Origin: Haplodiscus bocki | Taxonomy: Eukaryota | NCBI GenBank assembly: GCA_965655095.1 | Contig: OZ296654.1 | Coordinates: forward strand, 8,928,001-8,992,000 | Direction: 5' to 3' | DNA length: 64,000 nucleotides | Shown here: piece after piece, positions 25,461 through 43,500 of the stretch | Position numbering within the stretch: the first letter of the stretch is position 1 | How the letters are laid out: every line of letters starts with the position of its first letter | The notes under the pieces: model-generated | Seen by the model: only the letters and a program-made list of their open reading frames with translations | Database searches by the model: none | Told to the model about the DNA's origin: nothing | Translations under genes and position numbers: made by a program

Positions 25461-25763
25461 ATGGTTTACTCACTTTGTTTAACTTTGTTGATGATTTGGT
25501 CTTCTTTATGGACAGTTTTGGAAAAAGATGGAATTGTTTATGTGAACAATGTCGGAGAAGTCTTCAGCTCAGACGTCACCGTTGGGGAATTTTGTGTCTC
25601 TTTGTGTCTTCAGGATCACTTGCAGTTTATGAGGATCGGCAATTCTGATGAGGTTTCGATGACTCGCAGAATGTTACTTTTGTTTCTGTTGAGAAGTGGT
25701 ATAGAAACCAACCCTGGCCCGCCAAAAAAAAGAAATTGTGCAGAGAGCCCAGGAAATGCGTAA
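25461..25763 (+). CDS. Leader ORF with hydrophobic N-terminus and 2A-like (StopGo) motif; probably joined to the RepHel ORF by a -1 shift
   Basis: MVYSLCLTLLMIWSSLWTVL...RRMLLLFLLRSGIETNPGP-PKK. Conserved in copy 2, with 6 synonymous and 1 nonsynonymous change across the 2A-like segment. Confidence 0.7.
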   Translation: MVYSLCLTLLMIWSSLWTVLEKDGIVYVNNVGEVFSSDVTVGEFCVSLCLQDHLQFMRIGNSDEVSMTRRMLLLFLLRSGIETNPGPPKKRNCAESPGNA

Positions 25764-28700
25764 CATGTGGGCGTTTTTATGGCAGCAAAGACTGCTCCTG
25801 TTTCCAATCATCCATGGTAAAAGCCTCAGTTGGTGAAGACTATTTTGATCGGTCGCTGTTTTCTGCGCCATTCAATACCATGAGTCTTTTCTCGAACGTG
25901 CCGAATTCAACAGCTTTTTCATGCACAATCGCTAATTTGACGAGAATTTGCATTGTGTTTGGAATACCGTTTGTGGCAAAACCATTGAACACACACTTGT
26001 TGGGTGCCAAATCTTTGAACAGTTTGCATCCATCACAAACTCATCCTGTTCCAGGTGACGGTAATTGTTTGTTCTCTGCTTTAGCGGTGTCAATTGGGTC
26101 ACAATATTGGTATCATTCACAACTACGCCAGCGTATTTGTTTGGCTTTACCCTCCGTAGATATTGCTCCGCATTTTCTGGAAATTTACACAACCATTGAT
26201 GGAAATGTTGTGGTAGAGACAGCTTCAAACGTGAACGAATATTTGAATCGTTCCGGAATGAGATCGAATGGTGTGTATGGCACTTGTGTAGAGATCTATG
26301 CTTTCGCCCAAATTGCGGTGGCTGATGTTTACGTTTACCATTGCATGACAAAATTGTGGATAGTTTATAGCTATGCCGGAGATCGTGCTTCAATGGACGT
26401 TCCATCTGTCTTCCTGGTACATACTCATACAGGTAACCATTTTGAAACGGTAGCAGTGTTGTCGGCAGAAAATCCAAATTCACAGCAAAGTTTGCCTCAT
26501 GGTTGCGTCCAGAGTTCATTCCCAGATACGGCATCACAATGCAATGTGATTTCCGCGTCATTTCATGCGAACACTTCTGATCCAAAAGGTAGTGCGTGTT
26601 CTGAATTTAAAGTTTTGCCTCATTTGTGCGATGAAGGCCTCACATCACCCTCTGTTGGATTGGGCGGTATGCACAACGACCTTTTGTTGCCCAGCAACAG
26701 TTGTTTAAGCCTAGCGACAATTGAATGTGAAGAAAATGGTTCTAAGTGTGACCCGTTGAGCCCAGTTGTTTGCTTCAATGCCCTGCCTCAGGAGATTCAA
26801 TCCACGCAATCCGCACACAATGGCACAGCCACAATGATTATGAAGAAAGATAACGCCTGTCGTAATGAGGATGCCTCGAGTGACAATTGTGTTTTGACGT
26901 CCACTTTTTCAGCCGACAAAGCACAAAACAGAGAAATGTGCGGTAAATGTTGTCGAATTTCAACTCCTGCTTATCCTTTGCAATGGCAAACTCTTGAAAA
27001 AACAGCAATCAAACGAAGGAGATTTGGTTTGCGACCTACTGCTACCTGTCTGGTCTGCCAAAGTTGTTTCAATTACAATAATGGCGGAAATTGTTGGCGG
27101 TACGCTTGGCCTTCCGTGATTCATTCGTTACTGAAGGATCTCAGCATTCGAGATTGTACTATGAAAAAATTTGTTTCTTTTTTACCTCCCGAAATACGCG
27201 ACAGTTGGGCTATGTGTCAACATCTGCATCCTGCTGTTTCTATGGGTGATCCATCTGTTCTAGTTGATATAACAAAACGGAAGGAAGTTTTTCTGGACAA
27301 AATAAATTCGGGTAATTTCACTGATTTGGAGGAAGCCTTAGATAATGAATGTTATCCAAATTGTAGATGTCCCTTCGGTTGTTTCACATTTGTTGAAGAA
27401 ACAGGTCGAATCGGTTTCAACCACCTTGTAAATGGGATTTTGCCTTCATTCACATCGTTCAGCTCTGATTACTTGTACCATTTGCGAGGTGCAAGAGACG
27501 ATTGGTTGAAACCAATGAAAGTTTTGGATGCGTTTGATGTTTCCGGCTTTGTCAGTGTTAATGGGGCATATGGCCTTGTTATCGGAACTTGTGTGCAGCA
27601 TAACAATGGGTCTCACCTGCAGTATCTTCACCCGCCTGCACACCCGTCTCTGGGACGTCTCAGTGTTCCTACCAACGACAGATTAGCATTTGTTGCTCCA
27701 AATTTGCGTATTTTGAAGAATGCCAAAGCGAATTACGCTAGTCACACTTTCCAGTTGCTGAAAGCTGTCGGTAATTATTCAGGCATTAGTAGCATTCGCT
27801 TGAGCTCTCAACGCCGTTGGGATATTACTTCGGATCTGTTAGTGAAGGCGGAATCTCAATGTAGTTTTTACCGAAGCGATATTCAATATTTTTTGAATAG
27901 CTTAGTGTCCTCTGGCGAAATAACTGATGAAATCCGACAAGGCATTCAAAGTAAACCCAACATTGAACAATCGGCTGCTTGTCTTTCTGCGTCAACAAGC
28001 GTGTCAATTCTAGATACGTATCGTTTATTCAGTTCTCCTGGATTGACTGATGGACAACGCTTATGCGCAAAATTCAAGTCTGTGACGTTCGCTCAGCCTC
28101 CGAATTCGTTTGGTTCCTCTCCTCCAAAAATTTTGAGCTGCAAGACTCACTTTTTGTCGTTGTTGCAAACTTTATTTTGCATCTCTCCTCAACTGTGTCG
28201 ATCCATATCTGATTCAGCTGGTGTTGATAATGCGATTTTTCCTTTGCTGCAATTTTTGGACCCTGTAATTTTTCCAAGGTTCCGTCGCTGCACAAGGAAA
28301 ACTGTGGATGCGTCTATGAGTGATGGATTGTCGAAGTTGTTTACAAGATTTCCGGAAAGTCCATCTCGTTGTCTCAGTTTCGGTGTGTCACAATTTTGTG
28401 ATGATGTCATCCATGAAAACGTGGCAAGCCGTCAAGATATTTGGCATTTTTTGGAAGCTCAAGAATTTGAAGGTGTAAATGTCATACTTTTTTCATACGC
28501 GGGAGTAAATACTTTGCGTTCTAAATTCAAAGCTCCTCTGAACTTCCAAACTGCTCAGTCCGTTTTCGAGTTGAAATTTATTGCTACTGAAGGTTTAGCG
28601 ACTCGTAATAACATTCTTTTGAGGCATGGTGGTGTCTTTCAAAGTTTTTGGGTGTATAAAAGCAAAAGTATTTTTCCTGAACAGGTGAGGCTGCCTTGTG

Positions 28701-31700
28701 ATAGAGCGGTTGATCATTTTATTAATGACTATTGGAATATCTGTGTTTACTATCGACAGACCTTTGCCGATATTAGTGAGTTGCGGTCGAAATATTTTGA
28801 AACACTGGCAGGTCAAGGAAAATTCTTTTGTAAAAAGCATTCTCTGTTACTCACCCGTGATTTTCCTTCAAGTGGTTTCAAATGCTCATGTGGTAGAAGT
28901 TCTTTTTTACGTTGTCCAGTGTCTGGTTGTTTGGCAAGTGTTTGCAGGATGCATTCTGAAGATGAAAGTCAGGAAAAGCACTTTGTTTTTGATGGTAAAA
29001 AAAGGATCTTTGGTGAGTCCACAAAAAACTCAGCGTGCGGCTCAAGTCAGTTAGATGATTGTAGCTATAGCCGTGTTTCTGTCGATTCAGAGAATCGGTC
29101 CACATCGCCTACCAACACTGTCGCGTCCTCGGAATTTGTTACCAACCCTGGCCTTTTAGAGGAAGATTCTGAGGGATCGCATGTTTCGCTGCCTGTTACA
29201 ACTGCTGCTGGAGATTCAACTGTTGTTTTGGAACGTGATTTCCGAATAGACAGCACTGATTTTCAGCTCCCACTACATGTTTTATTGAATGGTCAATGCG
29301 GTTTACTGAAAAGGAGTAAAGGGTCTCCGTTGTATGTTGCAGCTAGACATAAGAGATTTCTGGAGAATATCACTGCAACGTCGCCCCCTAATTCTGTCCC
29401 TTTGCTTCAGTCGGAAGCCATGTTGTTTCCGTCCATCTTTTGGCACCAAAATACAGACGGCAGTTATTCGGGTGCAATACCGTCTCCTTTGTATAATGAT
29501 CACAAACAAAACGAATTGCTCGGCTTCGCTAGCTTAGAACAACATTTACAAACGCGCTTGAAAGATTCGTCTCTGTTGACGTCAACGGATCCTCGTTACG
29601 TCCAATACGTATTTGACACAATATTTAACCTACAGCTGCGTGTCAATGACACCAGAATAGTATTGAACAGAGGTTGGAGTGAAGCCGCTCGGCAACGAAA
29701 AAATGTACATGCCATGCGAGAAGGGGCAATTTTTTTTGATCAATGCGATTCTCGGAAGAATGTCAATGAATTGGGAGCAGCTTTGAAAGAACGACCAGCT
29801 ACATATTTTTTCACTTACACTTGTGGGCAGTCAACGCATCCTGGCTTGAGGAAGATTTTTAGTGCGTTGGACGCAAAGTTTCCGAAAGACGTCTGTAAAG
29901 AGGAGGTCCGAAAATCAGCGATTCAATCTGAAATGGTCACCATGTTGAGAGCGTGGGAACGAGCTTCTCGTCTTGTCATGAAGTACATTGAAACGTCACC
30001 CGAGCAGCCATTGGGAAAGGTTAATAAGATTTGGTATCGGTATGAGTTTCAAGATGAAGCTTGTGGGTTCCCTCATGTACATGCTTTGATTTGGACGGCA
30101 GAAGATTGCTTTAGTGAAGCAGTAAGGTCTAGAATTTGTTGCTCGGCAACAACGTTTCTGGGGAATTTATTGACTGAAGTTGGTTCGCACAATTATAGTT
30201 TGGATGAGTTGAACGAGTTACGAGATCTGTTCAACCGTTACCAATCACACAGCTGTTTTAAAGCTAAATTTCGTTGTCAGAAAAAAACTGACAAATTGAA
30301 AAGAAAAACGTGCCGCGTGCCCAAATACCCTCCTTCTGCTAATTTTACCTACAAATGTATTCACAAAGAACTGTCTGAGGAAACGATAGCAGTTTTGAAG
30401 AACATCGGATTAGCTGAGTCGAGTGACTTTGATTGTTCTGTCACCATTGATCAGCGCCTTTGTGGTGGCAAGCATCATTATCCAACAGAAAGTAACACGC
30501 ACACTTCTCCAACAAACGCCAAAATTTTTGCCCTCGTCCGATCTAGCACCAATCTACAAATTTGTGACATTTACATGAGTAGCCGTTATCTGTCAAAATA
30601 TGTTGCAGGCGTGGAGGAACGCGCCGAAGTTTCTATTTCTACGTCAAGTGCAACAGATTTGTATGACTTCCATGTTGATCAACAAGTGAACAACAAAATC
30701 GCTGGGGTATACTTGACCAATATGAGCAAGGAGGAAAAGCCAAAGAAAAAGTGTTTGAACTCTTGCATTTTGAGTTTAACGGAATCCGTGTGGTGGTCAT
30801 TGCGATTTCCTTACGTGGTGACCAATATACAATTCATTCATGTTGTCACTGCCCCGCGAGAGAAACGGGCTGGAATAGTCATTGAACCGAAATGCAGGCT
30901 TTCTAGTAGCAATCAGGGTCCTCTTTTTGGGCGCCAGAGTTCCATTAGACACAGCAAGGACTTTCCTCCTCACCGTTGCTTCACGGTTAATCAGAAGCTG
31001 CTGATAATTGATGCAGAAAAAAGTTCTCTTTCTCCAGACAAGATAACAGTTTTTGGTGTACGACCCCCTGAACTAACTTTTGTGCTCAAAGTGGAAAACT
31101 ATTTTACTTGGTTCTGCCGCTTCCGAAAGCCCTCAAAGTTGACACCAGAAAGTTTACTAAAGAGAAATGTAACCAAATCATATTGGGTGGATGGCCTCGG
31201 CTATTGCATATACCTTAATGCTTTGTACAAAGAAGCTTTTTTCAACTACTGTCGCAACTTTTCTAGTGGGGTCCGTCGTTTCTCCAGGCAATGTCATGAA
31301 GCCATTGCATGTACAACGAGCAGTTCAAGTCACAAGTTCATTTATGACAAAAAGGTTTGTCAAACTCAAGTAGTTTTATCGAACGTTGTTCCGAGGAACA
31401 CAACCAATTTTTTGACCCACATTCTGTTGTCTCTTGGAGAATACGTAACCGAACTTGACATTTTTTCTCAATCGAATATGAAATCTGCGTTCTTTGAGGC
31501 TTCTTTAGCGAGGTCTCATTTGGGATGCGAAGATTCCGAAGTTATTGATGTTGTTCGGCGCTTTGTGCTTGAACAATTACGCTATTATCCAGGATCATCT
31601 ACTTTACTAGATCGATTTGTTACGAGTGCCTATTTGTGCATCCAGCAAGCAGCACAAAATAATTCGGTCGTTTTTCCGTGCTCAACACCGCGCGTCTTAG

Positions 31701-33757
31701 AACAGAGTATTGTGCAGCAGAGTGACAGCAATATTTCACACGAATTAAATGCGCAGAAAGAGAGTCTTCTGTGTGCCATTGCCAATGGGGGTTATGTTGG
31801 TTTACCAACGTATGCAGAATTGATGAACGCCACCTTAGCACGTCCTTTTACTTGGAGCCAGAAGATACATAAAGCGCGCAACCAGACTGACGAATCATTG
31901 CATGATCAACAGAATATTTTGGATTACGTTTGTTCTTTGTACGATAATTATTGTTCTTGTACGACTGCCTTTATTAAACATCAGTTCATAGTTGGTCCAC
32001 CAGGTACAGGAAAGAGCCATGTGTTGATCCATTGTGTGATCGCGGCTCTAGCTAGGGGATTGAGATGCGTCATAACTAGTGTCGCTGCGGAGAGAGCTTC
32101 ACTTTTCGGCGGAAGACACATAAACGCTTTAATCCCTTTCCCTGTCGTTCAAAATGGAACGGTGACTCATCTAGTTTCGCATGCATTGAACACTCTTGCC
32201 CGAGATCCTCTAAAATTTACTTTTTTGGAGAGGTTGGATGTTTTATTTGTCGAGGAAGTCTCAATGATTTCAGCTGAACTTTGGTCCGCAATGGACAATG
32301 TGTTGCAAGCCGTGTCTGAAAACAATCTTCCTTTTGGAGGAAAGATTGTTATTTGCACAGGTGATTTTCGTCAACTTCCGCCTCCTACGGGAACGTTCCT
32401 TTTGCTGAGCAACTCGGTGTTAGCTAATTTCGAGGTTCGGTATTTGAAGCACTATGTGAGGATGCAGAACCAGCAAGGAAAGAGACTTCTGGATTTGCTG
32501 TCTGAATATCCTGTGACAGAAGCATGTATTAAGGAGTGTTGTGAGATCATTGACAAGTTCTGTATTTTTGTAAGCACGTGGACGGAAGTCCCTCTGGATA
32601 TTTTGAGAGTGTTCAGTACGCGAGTTGCGGAAAAAGAGGCCGTGGAAGAGAGAATATCGTTTGTGACAACACATCAAAACATACAGAGTGTGTCTTTCCA
32701 TTGCAAGGATGAAATGTCAAATACAGGAACCCAGAATTGGGTTACCGCAACAGCACCCGTCAGCAAGTTCCTCAACCGAAGTTGCCTTGAGCCAGAGTCT
32801 TTGTTTATACATGTTGGGTGTGTATTGCGCTTAACTTGCAATTTGCCATCGCTGAAACTGTTCCAGGGACAATTGTGTTTAGTTGAATCGTTCGATGAAA
32901 ATGATCCTCATATTGTTGTGAGAGTTGCACCAGCCGGAGTAAGGTCTGTGTCATCTAACAACCCGGACGTTAATTCCTGGAGACTTGTAGTTGTTCGTAA
33001 AAGAATTGGCGTTCTCCATAAGTATAGCAATTCTACCGTTTGCAGACGTGTTCAGTTTCCTTTGAAAATGTATGTGGCGTCAACGGTTCACAAAATAATG
33101 GGTGACACTGTTCCAAGCTTGGCAACACAGATTGTTGGTGGTAAAAAATTTTCCTACTGGCTGAAAGAGCAGCTTTATGTAGTTGTTAGTCGGGTCACTG
33201 ATCTTTCCCATATAACGTTTGTCGGTGACAAGCAGCGTACACTTGATGCAATTCTTCTTCTTTGCCGCAAAGATAGCCATTTGGTACCTTTGATAGATAA
33301 CTTTTTGTCGTCTCGTGGCAGTTGTAATTCCGGTGTTTCAGCGATCCAGACATTTTATCCCTTTCCCTTACGTGTTTTTGATGTACCCCTTTCGGCAATT
33401 GGTTACTGTTATTTGTTGGTGAGCGTTAAACGCAGGGAACTTTTTTACATTGGAAGCTGTAAGACGTTGCGGCGACGATTGCAGGAGCATAATTCGGGAA
33501 ATGCGAGCGCATTTACAAAGCCTGTTGAAAGAAGACCCTGGGCTTTAGTTGCTTACGTGACGGGGTTTTCCAACGCTGTTTCCCGAAGCCGTTACTCTTT
33601 CGAACAGGATTGGCAAAGAGCAATGGTTAATCACAAATATTCGAATGTGATGCTAACGCTTGCAGATTACTTGTCAGAATGCCATGTTCTTATGGATTTG
33701 TATAAAGTTACAGGTATCGAAACAGCCCTGGAATGTGATTGCATGCAGAATTTTTAG
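25736..33757 (+). CDS. RepHel polyprotein: OTU protease, Cys-rich regions, HUH Rep, PIF1-family helicase, C-terminal GIY-YIG nuclease
   Basis: OTU: VPGDGNCLFSAL...NHFETV. Rep motifs: YFFTYTC, YEFQDEACGFPHVHALIW, YLSKYV. Helicase: GPPGTGKS, EEVSMIS, PFGGKIVICTGDFRQLPP, RVQFPL..STVHKIMG, QLYVVVSRV. GIY-YIG: GYCYLL...FYIGSCKTLRRRLQEHN...RRPW...FEQDW. Confidence 0.92.
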   Translation: MCREPRKCVTCGRFYGSKDCSCFQSSMVKASVGEDYFDRSLFSAPFNTMSLFSNVPNSTAFSCTIANLTRICIVFGIPFVAKPLNTHLLGAKSLNSLHPSQTHPVPGDGNCLFSALAVSIGSQYWYHSQLRQRICLALPSVDIAPHFLEIYTTIDGNVVVETASNVNEYLNRSGMRSNGVYGTCVEIYAFAQIAVADVYVYHCMTKLWIVYSYAGDRASMDVPSVFLVHTHTGNHFETVAVLSAENPNSQQSLPHGCVQSSFPDTASQCNVISASFHANTSDPKGSACSEFKVLPHLCDEGLTSPSVGLGGMHNDLLLPSNSCLSLATIECEENGSKCDPLSPVVCFNALPQEIQSTQSAHNGTATMIMKKDNACRNEDASSDNCVLTSTFSADKAQNREMCGKCCRISTPAYPLQWQTLEKTAIKRRRFGLRPTATCLVCQSCFNYNNGGNCWRYAWPSVIHSLLKDLSIRDCTMKKFVSFLPPEIRDSWAMCQHLHPAVSMGDPSVLVDITKRKEVFLDKINSGNFTDLEEALDNECYPNCRCPFGCFTFVEETGRIGFNHLVNGILPSFTSFSSDYLYHLRGARDDWLKPMKVLDAFDVSGFVSVNGAYGLVIGTCVQHNNGSHLQYLHPPAHPSLGRLSVPTNDRLAFVAPNLRILKNAKANYASHTFQLLKAVGNYSGISSIRLSSQRRWDITSDLLVKAESQCSFYRSDIQYFLNSLVSSGEITDEIRQGIQSKPNIEQSAACLSASTSVSILDTYRLFSSPGLTDGQRLCAKFKSVTFAQPPNSFGSSPPKILSCKTHFLSLLQTLFCISPQLCRSISDSAGVDNAIFPLLQFLDPVIFPRFRRCTRKTVDASMSDGLSKLFTRFPESPSRCLSFGVSQFCDDVIHENVASRQDIWHFLEAQEFEGVNVILFSYAGVNTLRSKFKAPLNFQTAQSVFELKFIATEGLATRNNILLRHGGVFQSFWVYKSKSIFPEQVRLPCDRAVDHFINDYWNICVYYRQTFADISELRSKYFETLAGQGKFFCKKHSLLLTRDFPSSGFKCSCGRSSFLRCPVSGCLASVCRMHSEDESQEKHFVFDGKKRIFGESTKNSACGSSQLDDCSYSRVSVDSENRSTSPTNTVASSEFVTNPGLLEEDSEGSHVSLPVTTAAGDSTVVLERDFRIDSTDFQLPLHVLLNGQCGLLKRSKGSPLYVAARHKRFLENITATSPPNSVPLLQSEAMLFPSIFWHQNTDGSYSGAIPSPLYNDHKQNELLGFASLEQHLQTRLKDSSLLTSTDPRYVQYVFDTIFNLQLRVNDTRIVLNRGWSEAARQRKNVHAMREGAIFFDQCDSRKNVNELGAALKERPATYFFTYTCGQSTHPGLRKIFSALDAKFPKDVCKEEVRKSAIQSEMVTMLRAWERASRLVMKYIETSPEQPLGKVNKIWYRYEFQDEACGFPHVHALIWTAEDCFSEAVRSRICCSATTFLGNLLTEVGSHNYSLDELNELRDLFNRYQSHSCFKAKFRCQKKTDKLKRKTCRVPKYPPSANFTYKCIHKELSEETIAVLKNIGLAESSDFDCSVTIDQRLCGGKHHYPTESNTHTSPTNAKIFALVRSSTNLQICDIYMSSRYLSKYVAGVEERAEVSISTSSATDLYDFHVDQQVNNKIAGVYLTNMSKEEKPKKKCLNSCILSLTESVWWSLRFPYVVTNIQFIHVVTAPREKRAGIVIEPKCRLSSSNQGPLFGRQSSIRHSKDFPPHRCFTVNQKLLIIDAEKSSLSPDKITVFGVRPPELTFVLKVENYFTWFCRFRKPSKLTPESLLKRNVTKSYWVDGLGYCIYLNALYKEAFFNYCRNFSSGVRRFSRQCHEAIACTTSSSSHKFIYDKKVCQTQVVLSNVVPRNTTNFLTHILLSLGEYVTELDIFSQSNMKSAFFEASLARSHLGCEDSEVIDVVRRFVLEQLRYYPGSSTLLDRFVTSAYLCIQQAAQNNSVVFPCSTPRVLEQSIVQQSDSNISHELNAQKESLLCAIANGGYVGLPTYAELMNATLARPFTWSQKIHKARNQTDESLHDQQNILDYVCSLYDNYCSCTTAFIKHQFIVGPPGTGKSHVLIHCVIAALARGLRCVITSVAAERASLFGGRHINALIPFPVVQNGTVTHLVSHALNTLARDPLKFTFLERLDVLFVEEVSMISAELWSAMDNVLQAVSENNLPFGGKIVICTGDFRQLPPPTGTFLLLSNSVLANFEVRYLKHYVRMQNQQGKRLLDLLSEYPVTEACIKECCEIIDKFCIFVSTWTEVPLDILRVFSTRVAEKEAVEERISFVTTHQNIQSVSFHCKDEMSNTGTQNWVTATAPVSKFLNRSCLEPESLFIHVGCVLRLTCNLPSLKLFQGQLCLVESFDENDPHIVVRVAPAGVRSVSSNNPDVNSWRLVVVRKRIGVLHKYSNSTVCRRVQFPLKMYVASTVHKIMGDTVPSLATQIVGGKKFSYWLKEQLYVVVSRVTDLSHITFVGDKQRTLDAILLLCRKDSHLVPLIDNFLSSRGSCNSGVSAIQTFYPFPLRVFDVPLSAIGYCYLLVSVKRRELFYIGSCKTLRRRLQEHNSGNASAFTKPVERRPWALVAYVTGFSNAVSRSRYSFEQDWQRAMVNHKYSNVMLTLADYLSECHVLMDLYKVTGIETALECDCMQNF

Positions 33758-35099: not shown

Positions 35100-36032
35100 A
35101 TGTCTGAATATTTTGTTTTGGCGGCCTCTTCCCTTTATTGGGCAGCTCAGGAGAAACCTTACCTCTTTGATCCTTTCAAGTCACAATTTTGTGCAATTTC
35201 TGGTGCTTCGCTAAATAACTACCAACCAGAAAAAAACATTTGTTATCTTCTTCAATCGAATTCCTGCAACACTAATGGAAGAAAGGTTATCATTTGGCAT
35301 GATGCTGTCAATAACTCTTTGTCAAGCAAGAAGAATCCGGCAATGAGTCCTGAGGCTTTTTTCAGTAAACTGGCGTACTTGAGAAAATTCAATGTCGTGG
35401 CTTTTTCCTACTTACCACGATCAGGAGCGCATAATTTAAACGAGCTCTTGGAAAATTGTCCAACAGGAATTATTTTTTTGAAAATGAAATCGATTCTATC
35501 AAAACGGTACAAACTTTTACTTGATGAAAGTAACGATCTGCACCTGAATAGCTTGTTAGAGAATCATATGCTATCCAGAACACTGTTGAACAATGGTTTG
35601 CAGGATTTGACTTTGCGTCGGTGCCGCAATAGACGCAATAATCTCCGAAACAAAGTTAGTGTTTTAGTTTTTGGTTTCTGTTTTATTGACAATTTCGAAG
35701 ATAAGCAGCAACATATTTTTGCCACAATTTTTGAAAGAAAACCGGAACGTTAGTGATTACACGGTTGATGCATTTAACATCCGAACCAAGTGAGTAGATA
35801 CAAATTTCGTGCATAACATATTCACTTTACTCAGTGTCAATAGTTTAAAGTTTTTGGTAACCAAATCCGGAGTTGGAAGAGTTAACTGGAGAGTTTTTTA
35901 TGCTTCAATAACAGCACTTGCTTGTTTTCACGATTCATCGTGAAAACAAGCAAGTCCTCTGCGAACTATTTCAAGATTATCTGTTTCTTGCAGGTCAAAA
36001 GAAACAGATGTGAGTTTCACGAATCGGCATAG
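35100..36032 (+). CDS. SGNH-hydrolase-like protein, two exons (35100-35654, 35994-36032)
   Basis: Blocks resemble SGNH I/II/III/V: VLAASSL, AISGASL, VIIWHDAVNN, DLHLN. Donor GTTAGT (35655) and acceptor CAG (35993) are conserved in copy 2, as is the terminal exon (VKRNRCEFHESA* vs VRRNRGGLHESA*). Confidence 0.6.
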
Positions 36033-36696: not shown

Positions 36697-37689
36697 ATGA
36701 ATAGACAAGTAACTGTTGCTGAAGTTACAGGCGAAGGTTTCCTGCGCAACAGCCAGAACACTGTAATAAGGGGGATAGTTTTGGTTCTGAAAAAAAGTGA
36801 TCGGCCACTTCAGTTGTTTAGACCTCAAGCTACAAAATTGAAACGACCACTTCCTGAAGGGACATATGACAGAATGGCTATTATTGGTCAATGGAATAGT
36901 AAAGATTGTTTTGTCGTCATCTCAGTTTCCGCGCAGAAGTCTGCTAAACTGTTTTCGGATCGTCATCTGACTGTTGGTTCTGTTGTAGAGGTTACAGAGC
37001 CTATATATTCGAACACGTGTTTAGGGAATGACAAAAATAATCCGATTATTGAAACTCATCAGGCGATCGTTGTTATCAATAACGTAAGCAATGAGGATTT
37101 TCCGCCAATTCCAATTATTTCCCTACCGAGCACGCCCGCAATGTTCCATTACACTCTCAACAGTAGAAATTTGTTGTTTTTGCATGGAAACATTATATCA
37201 CCTACGTGTTCTGGAAGTATGTGCGACCGTCGTATTCTCAGAAATGAAACGGTGTGCGCTTGCTTACACAAGAATTCAGTTTCGTCGTGGACTGTCGCCG
37301 CACGCATCATTTCTAGGGACGTGGAAGAAGAAGCGGACGATCCCCTGAGCGGAGACATGACCCAAAGTCATCAGTTGGCATCGTTCTTTTGCAGCAATGA
37401 CGTTCTTCGATTGCCAGCTAGCTCGGTTGAATTGAATCTGTTGCGTGAATCAATGACTAGGGTGACAGCATATGTCAACGATAATGGTGGTTGGAGAATA
37501 TCTGGCTACAGCAAATCCAGTGTCAGTGATGAGTCAATTACTCAAGCTGTTCATCATGTGCGAATTTGTCGTCTTATGCCAGCTTCGGTAATCCCGAACA
37601 ACTTGAAGTACACTATTGGTAATGCTCGGCAACCGCCCAATCGGCCACCTCCACTACAGCATGCCAACCCGAATGTTCAGCACGATTGA
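36697..37689 (+). CDS. 330-aa element-encoded protein with Cys cluster, possibly OB-fold/RPA-like ssDNA-binding
   Basis: Intact ORF conserved in copy 2 with many synonymous changes; beta-rich N-terminal part (IRGIVLVLK, LTVGSVVEVTEP), CSGSMCDRR...CAC cluster, Pro-rich tail. The function is an inference. Confidence 0.7.
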   Translation: MNRQVTVAEVTGEGFLRNSQNTVIRGIVLVLKKSDRPLQLFRPQATKLKRPLPEGTYDRMAIIGQWNSKDCFVVISVSAQKSAKLFSDRHLTVGSVVEVTEPIYSNTCLGNDKNNPIIETHQAIVVINNVSNEDFPPIPIISLPSTPAMFHYTLNSRNLLFLHGNIISPTCSGSMCDRRILRNETVCACLHKNSVSSWTVAARIISRDVEEEADDPLSGDMTQSHQLASFFCSNDVLRLPASSVELNLLRESMTRVTAYVNDNGGWRISGYSKSSVSDESITQAVHHVRICRLMPASVIPNNLKYTIGNARQPPNRPPPLQHANPNVQHD

Positions 37690-40504: not shown

Positions 40505-43500
40505 ATGGTGTACTCAGTTTGTTTAACTTTGTTGATGATTTGCTCTTGCTTATCGACCGTTTTGGGAAAAGATGGACTTCTTCCTGTGAACAATGTTGGA
40601 CAAGTCTCCAGCTCAGACGTCACCGTTAAGGAATTTTATGTTTCGGTGTTTCTTCATGATCAGTTGCAGTTCTTGAGGACCGCTAATTCTGGTGATGTTT
40701 CGATGACTCGCAGAATGTTACTTCTGTTTCTCTTGAGGAGTGGTATAGAAACTAACTCTGGTCCGCCGAAAAAAAGAAATTTTGCAGAGAGCCCAGGAGG
40801 TGCGTAACGTGTGGGCGTTTCTATGGCAGCAAGGACTGCTCTTGTTTCCATTCATTCATTGAAAGAGCCTCAGCTGGTGAAGACTATATTGATCGGTCGC
40901 TGTCTTCGGCGCCTTTCAATAACCTGAGTCTTTTCTCGAACGTGCCGAATTCAATAGCTTTTTCTTGCGCAAACGCTAATTTGACGAGAGTTTGCATTGA
41001 TTTTGGAATACCGTTTGTGGGGACACCACTGAACACACACTTGTTGAGTGCCATTTCTTTGAACGGTTTGTTTCCATCACAAACTCATCCTGTTCCAGGT
41101 GACGGTAATTGTTTGTTCTCTGCTTTAGCGGTGTCAATTGGGTCGCAAGCTTGGTATCATTCAAAACTGCGCCAGCGTATTTGTTTGGCTTTACCCTCCG
41201 TAGATATTGCTCCGCATTTTCTGGAAATTTACACAACCATTGATAGAAATTTTGTGGTACAGACAGCTTCAAACGTGAACGAATAATTGAATCGTTCCGG
41301 ATTGCGATCGAATGGTGTGTATGGGACTTGTGTAGAGATCTATGGCTTCGTCCAAATTGCGGTGGTTGATGTTTACGTTTACCATTGCATGACAAAATTG
41401 TGGATAGTGTATAGCTATGCCGGAGATCGTGCTACAGTGGACGTTCCATCTGTGTTCCTGGTACATACTCATGCAGGTAATCATTTTGAAACGGTAGCAG
41501 TGTTGTCCGCAGAAATTCCAACTTCACAGCAAATTTTGCCTCATGGTTGCGTCCAGACTTCATTCCCAGATACGGCATCACAATGCAATCTGATTTCCGC
41601 GTCAATTGATGCGAACACTTGTGCTCCAAAATGTAGCGCGTGTTCTGAATGTGATGTTTTGCCTCATTTGTGCAATGAAGGCCTCAAATCAAGCTCTCTT
41701 GGATTGGGCGGTATCCACAACGATCTTTTGTTGCCCGGCAACAATTTTTTAAGCGGAGCGAAAATTGATTGTGAAAAAAATGTTTCCAGTTGTGTTGCAT
41801 TCAGCCCAGGCGTTGCCTTCAATTCCCTGCCTCAGCAGATCCATTCCACGCAATCCACTTACAATGACACAGCCACAATGATAGAGGAGAAAAATGAGGT
41901 CAGTCATCATGCGGATGCCTCGGGTAGCTCGTGTGTTTTCACGTCTACTTTTTCAGCCGACAAAGTACAAAGTACAGAAATGTGCAATAAATGTTGTCGA
42001 ATTTCAACTTCTGCTTATCCTTTGGAATGGCAAAGTCTTGAAAAAAAAGCAGTCAAACGAAGAAGATTTGGTTTGCGACCTACTGCTACATGTTTGGTCT
42101 GCCAAAGTTGTTTCAATTACAATAACGACGGAAATTGTTGGCGGCATGCTTGGGCTTCCGTAATTCATTCGTTACTGAAGGATCTCAGCATTTGAGATGG
42201 TACTAATAAAAAACTTGTTTCTTTTTTACCTCCCGAAATACGTGACAGTTGGGCTATGTGTCAACATTTGCATCCTGCTGTTTCTATGGCTGATCGAGCT
42301 GTTCTAGTTGATATAACAAAACGGAAGCAAGTTTTTCTGAACAAAGTAAATTCGGGTGTTTTCACTGATTTGGAGGAAGCCTTAGATAGTGAATGTTATC
42401 CAAATTGTAGATGTCCCTTCGGTTGTTTCACATTTGTTGAAGAAACCGGTCAAATCGGTTTCAACCACCTTGTAAATGGAATTTTGCCTTCATTCACATC
42501 GTTCAACTCTGATTACTTGAACCATTTGCGAGGTGCAAGAGACGATTGGTTGAAACCAATGAAAGTCTTGGATGCGTTTGATGTTTCCGGCTTTGTCAGT
42601 GTGCACGAGGCATATGGCCTTGTTGTAGGAACTTGTGTCAGTCATAACAATGGGTCTCAGCTGCAATAACTTCACCCGCCTGCGCACCCGTCTCTAGGAC
42701 GGCTCAGTGTTCCTACCAACGACAGATTGGCATTTGTTGCTCCAAATTTGCGTATATTGAAGAACGCCAAAGCTAATTACGCTAGTCACACTTTCCAGTT
42801 GTTGAAAGCTGTTGGTAATTATTCAGGAATTAGCAGCATTCGGTTGAGCTCTAAACGCCGTTGGGATATTACTTCGGATTTGTTGAACAAGGCTGAATCC
42901 CAATGCAGTTTTTACCGCAGCGATATTCAATATTTTTTGAATAACTTAGTGTCCTCTGGCGAAATAACTGATGAAATCCGACAAGGCATTCAAAGTAAAC
43001 CCAACATTGAACAATCGGCTGCTTGTCTTTCTGCGTCAACAAGCGTGTCAATTCTAGATACTTATCGTTTATTCAGTTCACCTGGATTATCTGATGGACA
43101 ACGCTTGTGCGCAAAATTCAAGTCTGTCACGTTCGGTCAGCCTCCCAATTTTTTTGGTTCTTCTCCTCCAAAAATTTGGAGCTCCAAGACTTACTTTTTG
43201 TCGTTGCTGCAAACATTATTTTGTATCTCTCCTCAACTGTGTCGATCTTTATCAGATGCAGCTGCTGTTGATAATGCGATATTTACTTTGATGCATCTTT
43301 TGGACCCTGTAATTTTCCCGAGGTTGCGTCGCTGCAAAAGAAAAACTGTGGATGCTTCTATGAGTGATGAACTGTCCAAGTTGTTTACTAGATTTCCGGA
43401 AAGTCCATCTTGTTGCCTCAGTTACGGTATCTCACAATTTTGTGATGATGTCATCCATGAAGACCTAGCAAGCAGTCAAGACATTTTGCCTTTTTTGGAA

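Follow-up and report, generated by a model that had tools for sequence, protein, structure and literature searches.

A conserved 2A/StopGo-type core at the N-terminus of Helitron-like Rep-helicases

Can a 2A (StopGo) peptide head the transposase of a DNA transposon? Such peptides are regarded as a device of RNA viruses and are rare in cellular genomes, and to our knowledge the transposons that carry them are retrotransposons. The question is raised by a stretch of 64,000 nucleotides from the genome of Haplodiscus bocki (NCBI GenBank assembly GCA_965655095.1, contig OZ296654.1, positions 8,928,001 to 8,992,000 of the forward strand; hereafter, the window), in which a leader with a 2A-like core at its C-terminal end lies just upstream of a giant Rep-helicase (RepHel) frame. 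The original prediction, made from the window letters, held that skipping at this core plus a frameshift would expose an N-terminal nuclear localization signal (NLS). In this study, we compared the locus with its copies and with related elements. Sequence comparisons support a genuine core of 2A/StopGo type at the start of a Helitron-like RepHel, and argue that no programmed frameshift accompanies it.

The leader frame, as read from the window, opens with an ATG at 25461 and runs MVYSLCLTLLMIWSSLWTVL...RRMLLLFLLRSGIETNPGP, then PKKRNCAESPGNA, to a stop at 25761-25763. The leader ends in ...RRMLLLFLLRSGIETNPG followed by Pro, i.e., ...SMTRRMLLLFLLRSGIETNPG plus Pro87; Gly86 ends at 25718 and Pro87 occupies 25719-25721. 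GIETNPGP, at 25698-25721, fits the experimentally supported core octapeptide (D/G/C/N)(V/I)ExNPGP, with the skip before its last residue; at position 12 (p12) of 2A, G is as common as D in RNA viruses, and G, C and N are active or over-represented there (PMC12846837). In the tract upstream of the core, MTRRMLLLFLLRS, the letters place Leu at -15, -14, -13, -11 and -10. In its leucines it agrees with the typically helical, Leu-rich stretch of about 10-20 residues that precedes 2A cores, and with both the skipping and the reduction classes of eukaryotic peptides in PMC13405545. The leader ATG has a good context (AAAATGG), with an acceptor-like string, TTTTCAG, 3 nt upstream. No Pfam family is matched by the leader, whose Kyte-Doolittle maximum over 15 residues is 1.79 (residues 2-16). 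In-frame Met67 and Met71 (window 25656-25670) precede the skip site by 20 and 16 residues, and starts there by scanning ribosomes would give a minimal N-terminal 2A, like the leaders of loci L044 and L053 described below.

The frame downstream of the leader (Table 1) fuses a Rep (HUH) domain and a PIF1-type helicase in one protein, and the homologue L038 gives the same arrangement. By its domain content, the element is a giant Helitron-like (HLE2-type) rolling-circle transposon with a single giant open reading frame (ORF). A second tandem copy lies 15 kb downstream, its large ORF broken into pieces. The components on which the original prediction was built, namely the leader, the 2A core, the offset frame, the 14-codon tail and the NSGP of the second copy, are all present in the sequence.

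Word searches with the N-terminal 330 residues and with the Rep-helicase core yielded 22 full-length relatives in ENA assemblies, where gene calls are prokaryote-style; 6 of the 22 have ExNPGP in their N-terminal region. Gene callers cut some of these ORFs short or start them downstream, e.g., P0001 and P0004. Two further loci, L044 and L053, are in the genome of the window; after their leaders of 19-20 residues come a basic patch, a CxxC knuckle and a region resembling OTU. L044 is 28% identical to the window family over the N-terminal and OTU region (E=4e-20), the alignment starting at SGIExNPGPPKKK, and L053 is linked by the same layout after the 2A and by a sub-threshold OTU match (20.1 bits, cut-off 23.3); both are provisionally placed in the Helitron-like group on their N-terminal and OTU region. 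The comparison thus covers ten lineages: the window family, L044, L053, P0002, P0003, P0005, P0006, the second L039 gene, P0010 and P0017.

In all ten lineages, E, N, P, G and P of the motif are unchanged, while p15 varies freely (T, S, P, A, L, W), p12 is confined to G, C and N, and synonymous changes occur at every motif codon. The RepHel cores of the other lineages are 43-58% identical to that of the window family. Leaders measure 19, 20, 53, 77, 83, 86, 86, 94, 94 and 160 residues, and a Leu-rich LL(R/K)S-like tract is all that the lineages share upstream of the motif; elsewhere the leaders cannot be aligned. That homologous elements keep ExNPGP, the point on which the original prediction had staked itself, is borne out in ten diverged lineages, and the proposal of a 2A/StopGo-type core at the RepHel N-terminus stands on both the core match and this conservation.

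The motif was also followed through gain and loss. In a RepHel tree built without the N-terminal 300 residues of the window family, the 2A-bearing proteins, seven with P0001 (same family, truncated gene call), group as one clade with 100% support in the Shimodaira-Hasegawa-like approximate likelihood ratio test (SH-aLRT), and path lengths inside the clade are about 1.1 changes per site. P0010 falls at a fork with a 2A-less clade that the tree does not resolve, so the tree fits either one gain and one loss of 2A or two gains. P0004 itself is without the ExNPGP motif. Upstream of its called start, at L041:2300-3100, an open frame reads ...SLSIKTFGRPKKRKK...CISCGKF (also ...SIKTFGRPKKRKK...); this is possibly a decayed 2A core in a lineage with an intact RepHel ORF, and would then agree with a loss of 2A in the sister clade. 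Degraded copies no longer carry the motif: it is NSGP in the second copy of the window, and two stop-ridden copies on another contig, about 70% identical, read ...TNPCL... and ...SKPAP.... Because ExNPGP is invariant amid synonymous changes and unrelated leaders and is lost in dead copies, the 2A core is under selection as a peptide.

Selection on the peptide does not of itself mean skipping. The motif may be conserved as part of a hydrophobic N-terminal segment kept for membrane or endoplasmic reticulum targeting or for degradation control, or be an undecayed module captured from a retrotransposon lacking long terminal repeats (non-LTR). The N-termini of five of the seven long leaders are hydrophobic, with Kyte-Doolittle maxima of 1.8-2.5; the maximum is 1.04 in the P0002 leader, and that of P0005 (1.67) falls away from the N-terminus, in the stretch right before the 2A core. 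A signal-like role is possible, but the leaders are not conserved, and L044 and L053 have none beyond the 2A peptide. Capture is made plausible by non-LTR families of the same genome, which carry a very similar LL(R/M)(S/A)GIExNPGP followed by a zinc finger, and by the habit of Helitrons of picking up fragments of host and transposable elements; several cnidarian non-LTR 2A-like sequences are inactive, but their cores are mutated (PMC3708506). However, what is conserved is exactly the StopGo core, with its Gly-Pro pair and permitted p12 set, across more than 1 change per site of RepHel divergence while leaders turn over freely, and a plain hydrophobic segment would not require invariant E, N, P, G and P. 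Conservation without skipping is thus an improbable explanation, and a functional StopGo core is the one we prefer.

The second alternative is double recoding, in which a programmed -1 shift of the ribosome, or slippage of transcription at the A-run after the motif, would come on top of StopGo. It was suggested by the window copy, where a frame of 2673 codons, one base out of step with the leader, crosses the A-run as ...KKKKLCREPRKC and stays open to 33757. Long A-runs are prone to slippage; both tandem copies in the window have 8 nt although they are only about 86% identical, and nine copies in the genome have 10 nt. The census of run lengths gives another picture. The leader region was found in 37 copies in this genome, and among 29 readable near copies the run is A9 in 21, A10 in 7 and A8 in the window copy only; a pattern census that includes the G+A(n) subfamily (34 sites) counts 23 runs of 9 nt, 9 of 10 nt and 2 of 8 nt, both of the latter being the tandem neighbours of this window. 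With 9 nt, the leader is continuous with RepHel and reads ...NPGPPKKKK(L/F)CREPRKC..., and the sole fully intact ORF found, L038:362-8602, runs uninterrupted for 2746 residues through leader, 2A, OTU, Rep, PIF1 and GIY-YIG. A continuous frame across Gly-Pro is therefore true of the family and false for the A8 copy of the window.

The same holds elsewhere. In the subfamily of the second copy, too, the offset is not inherited, three sisters having runs of 9, 10 and 10 nt. In the other lineages, 2A-bearing relatives are single ORFs, continuous through runs of 4-6 nt after the motif and one in-frame A8. Offset and slippery run are thus not conserved together in functional copies and lineages, as a programmed shift would have them, and a conserved downstream stimulator was neither seen nor sought. 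Homopolymers often change in length, whether by mutation or through errors of assembly; in contigs of four public runs of the same organism (X1-X4), of unrecorded type, the form with the extra A is a major one at this place, and no joints were seen. Since other copies mostly have 9 nt and the ORFs of other lineages are continuous, we take the A8 of the window to be either a mutable homopolymer shortened by one base or an assembly slip. The 8-nt runs at 25724-25731 and 40769-40776 lie in adjacent copies of different subfamilies, and this shared state could be coincidental or stem from gene conversion or an assembly effect at the locus. Programmed 'skipping plus shift' is accordingly very unlikely and, largely on the run-length census, was rejected; the shift in the original prediction is not needed. 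A chance match need hardly be entertained: NPGP by itself is short, but chance would give (D/G/C/N)(V/I)ExNPGP 1.8e-4 times over all six frames of the window, and it recurs at the same position in ten homologous lineages.

If StopGo operates alone, the residues after the skip site become the N-terminus of RepHel. In every 2A-bearing lineage, a basic cluster follows Gly-Pro directly or within 5 residues: PKKKK, PKKRR, PRKRG, KRKCKR, GKKRK, KKKR, KKTRR, SKKRR and KNKNRK in nine of them and RKQKRPK in the second L039 gene. The patch resembles an NLS of the K-(K/R)-x-(K/R) type, and the NLS-like start that had been proposed for the skipped product is thus a conserved trait. The 2A-less relatives P0008, P0013, P0009 and P0011 begin with Met and 6-30 residues, then a basic cluster (e.g., of KRKR type) and a CxxCG(K/R/Q)F knuckle.

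The element encodes, in this order, leader, 2A, basic patch, CxxCG zinc knuckle, OTU, Rep, PIF1 helicase and GIY-YIG, and we propose that 2A/StopGo quite probably releases a variable leader and a RepHel starting Pro-(Lys/Arg)n. The nascent ...LLLFLLRSGIETNPG would stall in the exit tunnel and be freed from tRNA-Gly without a Gly-Pro bond, and the ribosome would resume at Pro87. The first product would be a dispensable, lineage-variable leader peptide (86 residues here) and the second a RepHel starting Pro-Pro-Lys-Lys-Lys-Lys, with the N-terminal layout of the 2A-less relatives; no programmed frameshift would be needed. Because those relatives start with the same basic patch and CxxCG knuckle, StopGo would regenerate the ancestral N-terminus, now Pro-first. 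That skipping takes place and is useful to the element we infer from the sequences compared here.

Several observations weigh against this proposal. The window copy, with its A8 run, is unable to make RepHel from this start, and the leader start codons throughout are those inferred from ORFs only. Position 13 of the motif, which is otherwise I or V, is L in two lineages (NLES and GLES), outside the published core. Within the family, the ratio of nonsynonymous to synonymous changes (pN/pS) fails to set the 2A region apart: its value in that region is 0.29-0.60, from only 0-2 changes of either type, compared with 0.45-0.71 for the leader and 0.48-0.65 downstream in pairs with enough differences, and the changes per partition are too few to discriminate. 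Finally, among leucine-rich 2A-like peptides of eukaryotes, some cause 'fall-off' or a lower protein yield and do not skip cleanly (PMC13405545).

Three non-exclusive roles may be considered for an N-terminal StopGo. Since the leaders are dispensable in sequence and length, we favor one in which the transposase would be freed from whatever is translated upstream of it. By analogy with known N-terminal 2A peptides, skipping could also act as a gate, the unskipped fusion being kept from the nucleus by its hydrophobic N-terminus. A third possible role is dose control, i.e., damped expression, as for Leu-rich eukaryotic 2A-like peptides, which lower protein yield (PMC13405545). In this element, the domain nearest the skip site is OTU. 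OTU deubiquitinases have been linked to relief of 2A stalling (preprint PMC13405545), but OTU is common in Helitron-like elements generally (PMC11417382).

Table 1. Positions of the features discussed; unprefixed coordinates are those of the window, and the predicted skip site lies before the P that is written after each 2A peptide.
Feature	Position	Strand	Remarks
Leader ORF, Met1-Gly86	25461..25718	+	86 codons; hydrophobic N-terminus, 2A core at C-terminal end
2A/StopGo-like peptide MTRRMLLLFLLRSGIETNPG then P, Met67-Pro87	25659..25721	+	predicted skip between 25718 and 25719
14-codon tail PPKKRNCAESPGNA and stop, leader frame	25719..25763	+	product of the short A-run only
A8 run	25724..25731	+	one base below the 9-nt run of most copies; RepHel out of frame here
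RepHel frame	25724..33757	+	basic patch KKKK, CxxCG knuckle, then domains; Pfam; homologue L038
OTU	26051-26422	+	Pfam, weak match
Helitron_like_N	29792-30091	+	Pfam, 31.8 bits (cut-off 28.9)
PIF1 helicase	31976-32383	+	Pfam, 50 bits
GIY-YIG	33401-33622	+	Pfam; C-terminal of Rep-helicase; L038 protein residues 2648-2720
Second tandem copy, leader	40505..40807	+	about 86% identical; GIETNSGP; run G+A7 (8 nt)
L044, core GIEL	G000:C1:31764425	minus	genome of the window; leader is the 2A peptide MTKFLMIQLFRSGIELNPG then P only
L053, core GIEW	G000:C2:106872168	minus	genome of the window; leader is the 2A peptide MLSNFMKIWLLRSGIEWNPG then P only
P0002, core GIES	ERZ25074608
P0003, core GIES	ERZ25074608
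P0005, core GVEP	ERZ25074608
P0006, core CIEA	ERZ25074608
Second L039 gene	adjoining P0002		another OTU protein, opening with GLESNPGP
P0010, core NLES	ERZ25878734
P0017, core GIES	ERZ25067548
Repeat families with GIE(A/T/Q)NPGP, example sites in L042-L055	C1:1717469, C1:25773540, C2:21009282, C3:71158499

Other features of the element are as follows. The interval from the RepHel stop to the next tandem copy holds two more ORFs, at 35100-35753 (217 residues) and 36697-37689 (330 residues), with no NPGP or NSGP motif in either. A GIY-YIG domain is precomputed in 17 of the 22 retrieved relatives. Among ESM Atlas look-alikes of the N-terminal 446 residues, only weak plant OTU and Mutator-like element (MULE) clusters were found, with scores of <=0.86.

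The genome of the window is rich in similar motifs. A DNA pattern for GIExNPGP occurs 82 times, compared with 0 for the reversed control, and about 35 of these sites belong to this Helitron family; D(V/I/M)ExNPGP occurs 50 times, again with 0 for the control. In three abundant repeat families, Cys-rich finger motifs and APE-like sequence come after GIE(A/T/Q)NPGP, and in L054 Pfam detects a weak PHD-like finger and an APE endonuclease, the classical arrangement of non-LTR 2A. From the motif counts and repeat families, 2A-like peptides therefore appear to be widely used by the mobile elements of this organism. The similar cores possibly reflect exchange between element classes, or convergence on a G-I-E core preferred by the host.

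N-terminal 2A-like peptides have been proven active in non-LTR ORF2p (PMC3708506) and in sea-urchin NLRs, where they serve as both signal sequences and recoding elements (PMC4981915). The arrangement in the window resembles that of ORF2p/ORF1p of APE-type non-LTR elements (L1Tc, Ingi, CR1, L2, Crack and Rex1; Odon et al. 2013, PMC3708506), in which ExNPGP lies tens of residues from the enzyme N-terminus, often with a zinc finger next to it. It differs from them in that the protein is the Rep-helicase of a class II rolling-circle DNA transposon, not a reverse transcriptase, and in that a basic NLS-like patch, a CxxCG knuckle and OTU follow the motif. As in sea-urchin NLRs (Roulston et al. 2016, PMC4981915), the 2A is at or near the extreme N-terminus, and in L044 and L053 it makes up the whole leader; by analogy, a hydrophobic unskipped product could enter the secretory pathway and the skipped product be nucleo-cytoplasmic. 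Unlike those of NLRs, most leaders here are longer (53-160 residues), and the protein downstream is a transposase whose N-terminus resembles an NLS. Among viral 2A peptides, those of dicistrovirus and iflavirus types with G at p12 (PMC12846837) share G(V/I)ExNPGP and an upstream LLLxLL(R/K)S, whereas they lie between mature polyprotein products and not, as here, at a single N-terminal place in a genomic DNA transposon.

Helitron_like_N, PIF1, an upstream OTU and a C-terminal GIY-YIG are shared with the HLE2-type Helitron-like elements of the HELIANO survey (PMC11417382), which lists only accessory domains and in whose text a search found no N-terminal recoding peptide. Eukaryotic 2A contexts named in surveys are non-LTR ORF1p and ORF2p, a Ty3-like element, NLRs, RapGEF, and death-domain and ankyrin-like proteins, with no DNA transposon among them. 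We found no description of 2A in Helitrons or other DNA transposons in full-text searches of the literature, although such proteins may stand unannotated in the lists of 2A surveys. The StopGo mechanism would be the usual one, with a canonical core; the novelty lies in the host class, a rolling-circle DNA transposase.

A wider scenario, which we offer tentatively and think doubtful as a whole, is that the N-terminal 2A serves as 'insulator and gate'. Upstream products, whether variable leaders or exons of the host or of neighboring elements in head-to-tail arrays, would be shed; only the skipped Pro-(Lys/Arg)n product would be nuclear, and unskipped fusions would be diverted or degraded. The neighboring OTU may counter the stall quality control set off by the Leu-rich 2A, and 2A might have spread between non-LTR and Helitron-like elements, possibly also Polinton, in marine invertebrate genomes.

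The finding bears on both the recoding and the transposon fields. Homopolymer length differences, as at this locus, can mimic programmed recoding if one locus alone is seen. With nine different cores and leaders of 19-160 residues, the lineages form a natural series in which the purpose of an N-terminal 2A can be studied; the candidates are shedding of upstream sequence, a nuclear gate and dose control. A conserved 2A heading a rolling-circle DNA transposase would extend this device to class II elements.
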